NCBI RefSeq assembly: GCF_947568905.1
Contig: NC_079166.1
Span: forward strand, 69,626,001-69,690,000
Direction of reading: 5' to 3'
Origin: Ostrea edulis
Lineage: Eukaryota
Length of the DNA stretch: 64,000 nt
Within the stretch, counting starts at the first letter, position 1; every line of letters begins with the position of its first letter. The position numbers and the translations under genes were made by a program. Below the pieces are notes generated by a model. The model worked only from the letters and a program-made list of their open reading frames with translations, searched no databases and was not told the DNA's origin. Positions 48,265-48,981 of the stretch are shown here, in pieces.

Positions 48265-48981
48265 TCAACAATGAATAAAAATATTCTCTATGAGTCTCTT
48301 CAACCAGACACGGGATAACGTATAATCTGGGTGAACACCATCCAAATACAGACTGAAATTGTAAGAAATTCTATGTGATTTACCTTTTTCTTTTCTGTAT
48401 CTCAATGTGTCTAGTTTATATTTTGGGCCAAACACTGAGCGAAGACCGTTGATATATCTGATGTAATCGTTTAAAATGCCAATGATCTCACTCAGAACTT
48501 TGTCCTTCTCTCTAAATATTTCAGGATCACTGTGACCCTTGGATTTATTCCATTGTACAATCGAGTATGGTGGAATTTCCAAAAATATAGGAATTACCTC
48601 TGGAAAGTTTTGGATGTATGCCCTAAACAAATCTATGTAGTAGGTTATATTCCTAACACAGGAGGAATGGTCTACATACCTGAAATCTATGAACTTCCCA
48701 TTCTTCCTGGTAACGTCACAGGTCCCAAGCCAGATGTAAAGCGTAACGCGTCCGTGTCGCTTGATAAGTTCAGGCAAATTCCGTTTTATCCACGGCAAGA
48801 AATCAGGAAATCGAGCACCTGGTCTACATTCAAATTGTATATGAAGTTTTACCTGCTTCAACAAATCAAAATGTTTTCTTAAATAATTCCCTATGCTAGT
48901 AGAAATAAGTACAGGCTGACTTGCTATAGATTTCGATACTAAAGGTCTCTCTAAATACTTAAGTAATTTACTATTACTCAT
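48265..48981 (-). CDS. SGNH/GDSL hydrolase-fold protein in the leader of the inner Gypsy, 238 aa
   Basis: Blocks I STSIG, II RPGA, III WLGTCD and V DGVHP in the correct order and spacing; located between the PBS and gag. Confidence 0.78.
   Translation of the reverse strand: MSNSKLLKYLERPLVSKSIASQPVLISTSIGNYLRKHFDLLKQVKLHIQFECRPGARFPDFLPWIKRNLPELIKRHGRVTLYIWLGTCDVTRKNGKFIDFRYVDHSSCVRNITYYIDLFRAYIQNFPEVIPIFLEIPPYSIVQWNKSKGHSDPEIFREKDKVLSEIIGILNDYIRYINGLRSVFGPKYKLDTLRYRKEKGKSHRISYNFSLYLDGVHPDYTLSRVWLKRLIENIFIHC

Follow-up and report, generated by a model that had tools for sequence, protein, structure and literature searches.

Why should a Ty3/Gypsy element carry, ahead of its capsid gene, an open reading frame that looks like a small esterase, and does this gene belong to the element at all? 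The first-pass annotation of the window (the whole 64,000-nt stretch of Ostrea edulis DNA analysed here) described an intact 238-aa sense ORF between the primer-binding site (PBS) and gag, with SGNH-type sequence blocks that retained Ser and Asp-x-x-His but had STS for GDS and GTCD for GxND. To answer this question, we first re-examined the ORF and its surroundings, and this observation proved to be correct. The ORF, which we call ORF0, runs from ATG to stop (250 aa if counted from an upstream TTG at 49017), and the conserved N-terminus of relatives supports the ATG. The motifs were as described: S27-T28-S29, G86-T87-C88-D89 and D214-x-x-H217. ORF0 is sense to an LTR retrotransposon whose gene order is that of Ty3/Gypsy, and the features of this element are collected in the table below.

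Features of the ORF0-bearing Ty3/Gypsy element (positions in the window)
Coordinates	Strand	Feature	Length	Properties
41832..50569	-	Whole Ty3/Gypsy LTR retrotransposon	8,738 bp	Flanked by the 4-bp target-site duplication CACT (minus-strand reading) at 50570-50573 and 41828-41831
50007..50569	-	5' LTR	563 bp	TG...CA ends; contains a TATA-like motif
49994..50005	-	Primer-binding site (TGGCGCCCACGT)		Starts 1 nt after the 5' LTR
48982..49993	-	Long non-coding leader		No sense ORF of 40 aa or more; about 82% identical to the leader of the closest relative, L008
48265..48981	-	ORF0, stand-alone predicted SGNH-fold esterase-like protein	238 aa plus stop	Basic (pI 9.75), no transmembrane stretch; S29 / G55 / C88 (in place of Asn) / D214 / H217
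47953..48264	-	T-rich spacer between ORF0 and gag	312 nt	8 stops in the ORF0 frame, its own included
46833..47952	-	gag (PNMA/PEG10-type capsid), broken		2 frame changes relative to an intact relative, no stops inside the aligned stretches
42584..46832	-	pol (protease, RT, RNase H, integrase), broken		1 frame change relative to an intact relative, no stops inside the aligned stretches
42207..42219	-	Polypurine tract (AAGAGGGGGAGAA)		Abuts the 3' LTR
41832..42206	-	3' LTR	375 bp	TG...CA ends; 188 bp shorter than the 5' LTR through one internal indel; otherwise 4 mismatches in 375 aligned bases

The small number of differences between the two LTRs indicates that this is a young copy. One correction concerns the position of the ORF: a leader of about 1 kb separates the PBS from ORF0, so that ORF0 is not close to the PBS. 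Counted from the LTR end, these 1,025 nt hold 22 ATGs, and ATG counts in the leader and in the spacers were as expected from base composition. No tRNA gene in the window matched the PBS, and no second copy of the ORF was present in the window. The first-pass annotation also pointed out that the ORF stays open while gag is broken. This is true, but it carries no statistical weight: three frame changes in about 5.4 kb of gag-pol predict about 0.4 in 717 nt, and an intact ORF0 is therefore expected about two times in three.

In the next step, we asked which fold the ORF0 protein would adopt. The protein alone gave no Pfam hit at E up to 1 and no hit by sequence in the PDB, whereas a word search returned 32 homologs of 33-88% identity, nearly all of about 240 aa. 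With 21 of them as the alignment, AlphaFold2 gave a model with pLDDT 93.7 and pTM 0.90. The 50 PDB matches listed by Foldseek were, apart from a few designed scaffolds, SGNH/GDSL hydrolases, at probability 1.00 and TM up to 0.68, and the named matches in BFVD were likewise SGNH esterases, from phages. The model thus has the flavodoxin-like three-layer alpha/beta/alpha fold with a parallel central sheet that is expected of this superfamily. Support from Pfam was weaker, as only 4 of 22 relatives reached Lipase_GDSL (PF00657), with a best E of 7e-6. Family profiles searched against the PDB gave only spurious coiled-coil hits, and two of them (A1 and A3) hit no esterase at E up to 10.

The motif residues were found where the fold requires them: S29 follows strand 1 (residues 22-27), G55 follows strand 2 (49-52), G86-T87-C88-D89 follows strand 3, and D214-x-x-H217 lies just before the last helix (220-237). 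In 98 full-length relatives, we counted the block I Ser in 98, the block II Gly in 92, the block III Gly in 98, Cys in place of the block III Asn in 98, Asp in 97 and His in 98. GTCD in place of GxND is therefore not a defect of this copy but a signature of the whole family, and although the canonical Asn is absent, the fold assignment stands, since solved SGNH members without this Asn exist (PMC10792757). The case of STS in place of GDS is different. Of the 98 relatives, 84 have Asp before the Ser and 90 have Lys after it, while the window copy and its closest relative have T or N, and I, at these places. The block I Asp normally forms an Asx-type motif that holds the Ser backbone (PMC10792757); we infer that a Thr could do the same as an ST-motif.

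We then examined whether ORF0 is part of the element or a secondary insertion; this, together with a fold other than SGNH, had been set beforehand as a result that would refute the reading, and neither was found. Relatives of 35-88% identity lie at the same place, 226-461 nt upstream of gag, in diverged, intact elements with near-identical LTRs. Among the loci carrying relatives of ORF0 (numbered L002 to L030), the order ORF0-gag-pol recurred in L002-L005, L006, L011 (two units in tandem), L017, L018, L021 and L028. In L003 and L004 (48% identity), an ORF0 of 245 aa is followed by gag of 415 and 403 aa and pol of 1,420 aa, all open; the LTRs are 1,112 bp and 99.9% identical. The closest relative, L008 (88% amino-acid identity), aligns with the window from the leader through ORF0 and the spacer into gag. 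Against L008, ORF0 shows no gaps, 88% nucleotide identity and 88 nucleotide differences, which fall 17/15/56 by codon position. The dN/dS was 0.11 (NG86) to 0.20 (YN00), in comparison to 0.31-0.40 for the first 109 codons of gag, which indicates purifying selection. A chance ORF and a secondary insertion were both rejected on these grounds. ORF0 is stand-alone in all 20-odd contexts; in the nine contexts examined for reading frame, it is a separate cistron, with 1-14 stops in the ORF0 frame from its own stop to the next ORF, whose frame varies. An alignment of the 120 nt before the gag start in six lineage-A elements (the Gypsy lineage of the window copy) showed no shared motif, and we make no claim about a splice acceptor or an internal ribosome entry site.

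The same ORF family was also found with other kinds of retroelements. A second Gypsy lineage (B), in which gag matches PEG10 capsid and pol is only 27-29% identical to lineage A, carries it in L006, L028 and the contig of one relative, P0083. In mussels, the ORF is followed by LINE genes instead. An ORF1 with a PHD or other zinc finger and then an ORF2 with APE endonuclease and RT follow the ORF in L009, L012-L014, L020, L022, L024, L027, L029 and L030. L009 has an 860-aa ORF1 and a 1,194-aa ORF2 and no LTRs, and in L012, L013 and L014 the ORF1 has a PHD finger. L020 is a second LINE type with all three ORFs open; its ORF1 has a FYVE/PHD-like zinc finger, and its ORF2 is only 21% identical to that of L009. 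Finally, the ORF accompanies a BEL/Pao element (L015 and L016), where one relative, P0098, lies next to a 2,071-aa gag-pol (Peptidase_A17, E 1.8e-44; DUF1759; DUF5641). The two BEL/Pao contigs are circular permutations of one another, and the LTR could not be placed by eye in the 760-nt or the 396-nt gap, so that a position upstream of gag-pol is likely but not settled for BEL/Pao. L007, L010, L019, L023, L025 and L026 were too short or too decayed to assign a carrier. Comparison of the mostly Gypsy-linked alignment with the alignment of the clade holding the LINE-linked members by hhalign gave probability 100 and E 6.6e-90 over 241 columns, and LINE-linked proteins matched the window ORF end to end (tblastn E 7e-34 to 2e-47), in agreement with one family.

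To distinguish exchange from common descent, we compared ORF0 with the polymerases of its carriers. Within lineage A, pol (55-69% identity) is better conserved than ORF0 (about 47-49% between the window and L003 or L005). Between lineages A and B, however, pol identity drops to 27-29%, and against BEL/Pao it is undetectable, while ORF0 stays at 32-41% across the same pairs. In a neighbour-joining tree of 105 proteins, the carriers have their own clades: Gypsy A (57 sequences, 174 of 200 bootstraps), Gypsy B (15 sequences, 166 of 200) and LINE type 1 (25 sequences, 156 of 200), and the BEL-linked and LINE type 2 members fall in a small separate group. This pattern fits a few old transfers between retroelement lineages followed by long retention in each, although the tree, which has no usable outgroup, does not give the direction of transfer (LINE to LTR or the reverse).

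A full HMM search returned 1,852 cluster representatives at E up to 0.001 and 284 at E up to 1e-30, so the family comprises at least 1,852 clusters; the best 150 are nearly all stand-alone proteins of about 240 aa. A scan of viral contigs found no relative. Every named source is a bivalve (Crassostrea gigas, Saccostrea cucullata, Mytilus edulis, M. coruscus and M. galloprovincialis) or a metagenome bin of a bivalve symbiont (Candidatus Thiodiazotropha and Sedimenticola), which we take to be host contamination. As this range rests on few named records, a restriction to bivalves is not shown. The closest named relatives are from oysters.

Taken together, we consider ORF0 a true, selected accessory gene of this Gypsy lineage. 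In this view, it encodes a small, basic, cytosolic, SGNH-fold serine hydrolase-like protein with an intact Ser-Asp-His triad and a backbone Gly in the oxyanion hole, in which a family-wide Cys replaces the usual oxyanion Asn; it is a separate first cistron, never fused to gag, and belongs to one large family of roughly 240-aa ORFs that sit ahead of the structural gene in at least four retroelement lineages of bivalves, namely Gypsy lineage A, Gypsy lineage B and two LINE types. By analogy with the esterase domain of the zebrafish ZfL2-1 ORF1 protein, which is active at low turnover and binds acidic phospholipids (PMC3905857), it would hydrolyse at low turnover, or bind, an acyl ester or acidic lipid, and help a step common to all retroelements, such as assembly, trafficking or membrane association of the RNA-protein particle. 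What our data establish is the predicted fold with its motifs and conserved triad, the basic character of the protein (family median pI 9.5) and its lack of a membrane anchor, its position as a separate first cistron, its conservation under purifying selection, and its distribution and exchange among carriers, while catalysis, the substrate and the step served are inferences. Several points speak against a working enzyme of this kind. No activity, substrate or expression data exist for any member; the Cys in place of Asn could lower or change the chemistry; the window copy and its nearest relative have also lost the block I Asp and the following Lys; no sequence similarity to any PDB chain was detected, so that kinship to the solved LINE esterase (4C1B) is unproven; and the 1-kb leader with 22 ATGs makes it unclear how ORF0, or gag after it, is translated. 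We are therefore highly confident that ORF0 is an SGNH-fold accessory gene integral to the element and lean towards this explanation as a whole, but that it is a working hydrolase serving particle or membrane biology is about as likely as not. The interpretation in the first-pass annotation, an env-independent accessory gene for membrane interaction or deacylation that is not a standard Gypsy component, was supported as far as it could be tested, with its function remaining inferred. The link it drew to LINE esterases is stronger than it had guessed, since members of the very same family head bivalve LINEs.

Among the alternatives, the one that survives best, though it appears unlikely, is a pseudoenzyme in which the SGNH scaffold is kept as a binding module for lipid, RNA or a host protein without hydrolysis, as in the Oskar OSK domain. 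The Cys in 98 of 98 members, the basic character of the proteins and the very low turnover and acidic-lipid binding of the ZfL2-1 esterase are compatible with this reading, and SGNH-fold proteins without catalytic residues are on record (PMC10792757). However, Ser, Asp and His are invariant or nearly so across all four carrier groups despite only 32-41% overall identity, which would not be expected of a pure binding module, and SGNH members that lack the block III Asn but keep the triad are listed among solved enzymes. More doubtful still is a host-directed enzyme that removes an acyl mark from, or destroys a small molecule of, a bivalve defence or silencing pathway. This would explain why LTR elements and LINEs, which replicate differently, all keep the module, and it would agree with the named bivalve sources and the conserved triad, but there is no direct evidence of any kind, and esterases also occur in LINEs and Penelope-like elements of many phyla (PMC3905857), which argues for a general rather than a host-specific role. 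An envelope substitute or receptor-destroying enzyme acting outside the cell, like the haemagglutinin-esterases of some enveloped viruses, is suggested only by several close structural matches to sialate O-acetylesterases and is contradicted by the lack of a signal peptide-like or transmembrane stretch (the highest 19-residue hydropathy is 0.89), by the absence of an env gene or other ORF downstream of pol in the window, and by the presence of the ORF in LINEs, which have no extracellular stage. A passenger (a host gene fragment or unrelated insertion), for which only the long, otherwise non-coding leader and the dispensability of such an ORF in canonical Gypsy elements could be cited, is refuted by the recurrent position in more than ten independent, diverged elements, by the dN/dS values, by the lack of repeats or a duplication of its own around the ORF, and by the fact that the named stand-alone proteins whose loci were looked up (P0075, P0086 and P0087) lie in retroelements.

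A more speculative possibility, which we regard as unlikely but cannot exclude, is that ORF0 is a mobile front-end module that bivalve retroelements of at least four unrelated lineages have passed to one another, and that its invariant Cys next to the catalytic centre marks a changed chemistry, for example acyl transfer through a thiol or a redox-gated esterase. It would then be aimed at something all retroelements face in these hosts, such as a lipid-linked trafficking step or a host restriction pathway, and would be a common dependency of otherwise unrelated mobile elements.

Esterase domains in retroelements have been a puzzle since 2003, as they recur in LINEs, Penelope-like elements and rotifer LTR elements, yet no role has been shown. 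The present family offers a clean natural comparison: one stand-alone protein, kept under purifying selection, heads Gypsy elements and LINEs of the same host group, which copy themselves in quite different ways, and accompanies a BEL/Pao element, and this points to a step or host factor common to all of them. It also provides a large alignment (1,852 clusters) with a fixed Asn-to-Cys change, useful for structural and evolutionary work. In practical terms, many members are currently annotated as host genes or as bacterial proteins in symbiont bins, and transposon annotation pipelines that expect gag as the first gene will miss this ORF. In the literature searched, which did not include Repbase reports and subscription journals, we found no paper describing an SGNH ORF ahead of gag or this bivalve family. 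Esterases in retroelements are already known, and what is new here is the position, the stand-alone form, the fixed Asn-to-Cys change and the sharing across Gypsy, LINE and probably BEL/Pao.

By structure, the best matches are small bacterial and fungal SGNH acetyl-esterases of the PAF-acetylhydrolase-like group (the Bacteroides acylhydrolases 4iyj, 4ppy, 4hf7 and 3p94; 2hsj; yeast Iah1, 3mil; the sialate O-acetylesterases 6njc and 7pzh; PatB, 8tlb), with E 3e-7 to 1e-4, TM 0.5-0.68, the same block order and a similar size. Identity is only 12-18%, however, and the ORF0 model has no block III Asn and two extra beta-hairpins (residues 91-100 and 193-207), the second in a basic stretch of lower confidence. 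An additional ORF between the 5' LTR and gag also occurs in plant Ogre-type Gypsy elements, where it is not known to have an assigned fold; we mention this as a lead only. The esterase domain of LINE ORF1 proteins (type IV ORF1 of CR1, L2 and RTEX; Kapitonov & Jurka 2003; ZfL2-1 structure 4C1B, Schneider et al. 2013, PMC3905857; PMC4120745), which is also known from Penelope-like elements, shares the SGNH fold with a conserved Ser-Asp-His triad, the placement ahead of the polymerase gene and the presence in LINEs whose ORF1 has a PHD finger, the last applying to relatives of the same family, as the carrier of the window copy is a Gypsy element. There is short motif likeness in blocks II, III and V to the ZfL2-1 blocks tabulated in PMC10792757, and 3p94, the best HHpred match reported for L2 esterases (PMC4120745), is among our top Foldseek matches. 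On the other hand, in LINE ORF1 proteins the esterase is a domain joined to a coiled coil or zinc finger, while ORF0 is a stand-alone ORF of about 240 aa with neither and with Cys for the block III Asn, and by motif comparison the residue at the place of the "transposon-specific" His of ZfL2-1 is Trp or Phe. In the Jockey-superfamily survey, the esterase ORF1 was seen only in vertebrate subgroups. The precedent among LTR elements is the GDSL esterase ORF3 of bdelloid rotifer Vesta retrotransposons, shared with Athena Penelope-like elements (Rodriguez, Kenefick & Arkhipova 2017, PMC5408684). There, too, an extra GDSL/SGNH ORF of unknown function, without a transmembrane or coiled-coil part, is shared between unrelated retroelement classes, but it lies downstream of pol, keeps the canonical S-G-N-H residues and belongs to a different host phylum, whereas the ORF described here lies upstream of gag, has Cys for Asn, and is shared across Gypsy, LINE and probably BEL/Pao elements.

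The Gypsy element seems to have landed in repetitive DNA: tandem-like repeats lie just outside its 5' LTR and a pair of direct repeats brackets the element.

Related observations were made at loci and in proteins of other records that carry the ORF0 family, the small predicted SGNH-fold esterase-like ORF. In L011, a locus from one of the public bins considered below, two copies of the whole ORF0-gag-pol unit were found in tandem, 8,874 bp apart and 99.9% identical, which is either a tandem LTR-element array or an assembly effect. Another locus, L001, has the identical 245-aa ORF, but no gag or pol gene was called downstream of it, and it may be a truncated or interrupted copy. 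The short-read contigs of the BEL/Pao element (L015 and L016) were exact circular permutations of each other, and L006, a locus of the second Gypsy lineage, repeats its first 119 bases at its end; collapsed LTRs or circular forms are both possible.

Public bins named as bacteria (Candidatus Thiodiazotropha and Sedimenticola) contain complete animal retroelements with this ORF, as seen for the loci L011 and L018-L020 and for the family proteins P0038, P0056, P0106, P0162 and P0260. This is most likely explained by bivalve host DNA that was binned with the symbiont. In addition, family members or fusions with the neighbouring LINE ORF1 carry host-gene names in public Mytilus records (proteins P0227 and P0268; CXXC1/CPS40 and RAB3GAP1), which are probably annotation transfers from the PHD finger, or chance.

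Coordinates of the features observed around the Gypsy element and at related loci
Sequence	Positions	Strand	Feature
Window	4370-5467	minus	Intron-less ORF matching rhodopsin-family 7TM receptors (E 1e-22)
Window	7000-26700	minus	Dense ORF array, GC 42-48% against 33-38% around it
Window	7049-7966	minus	CCHC zinc-knuckle protein
Window	13627-14100	minus	Weak adenovirus-type protease match
Window	18242-19351	minus	Integrase with chromodomain
Window	21401-22054	minus	A32-like packaging ATPase
Window	22080-22610	minus	BIR+RING IAP-like gene
Window	22647-26627	minus	Protein-primed DNA polymerase B (PF03175, E 3e-57)
Window	29872-31071	minus	Intron-less ORF matching rhodopsin-family 7TM receptors (E 4e-26)
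Window	40664-40983 and 52632-52950		Direct repeats, 86-89% identical, spacing about 11,967
Window	50924-52012		Tandem-like repeats
L001	10001-10738		245-aa ORF
L011	1-16932		Two tandem copies of the ORF0-gag-pol unit

Apart from the Gypsy element, the window holds a dense array of ORFs of higher GC content than its surroundings, flanked by two ORFs that match 7TM receptors. The array, in which a protein-primed DNA polymerase B is found together with an A32-like packaging ATPase, an integrase and a weak match to an adenovirus-type protease, looks like an element of the Maverick/Polinton type.
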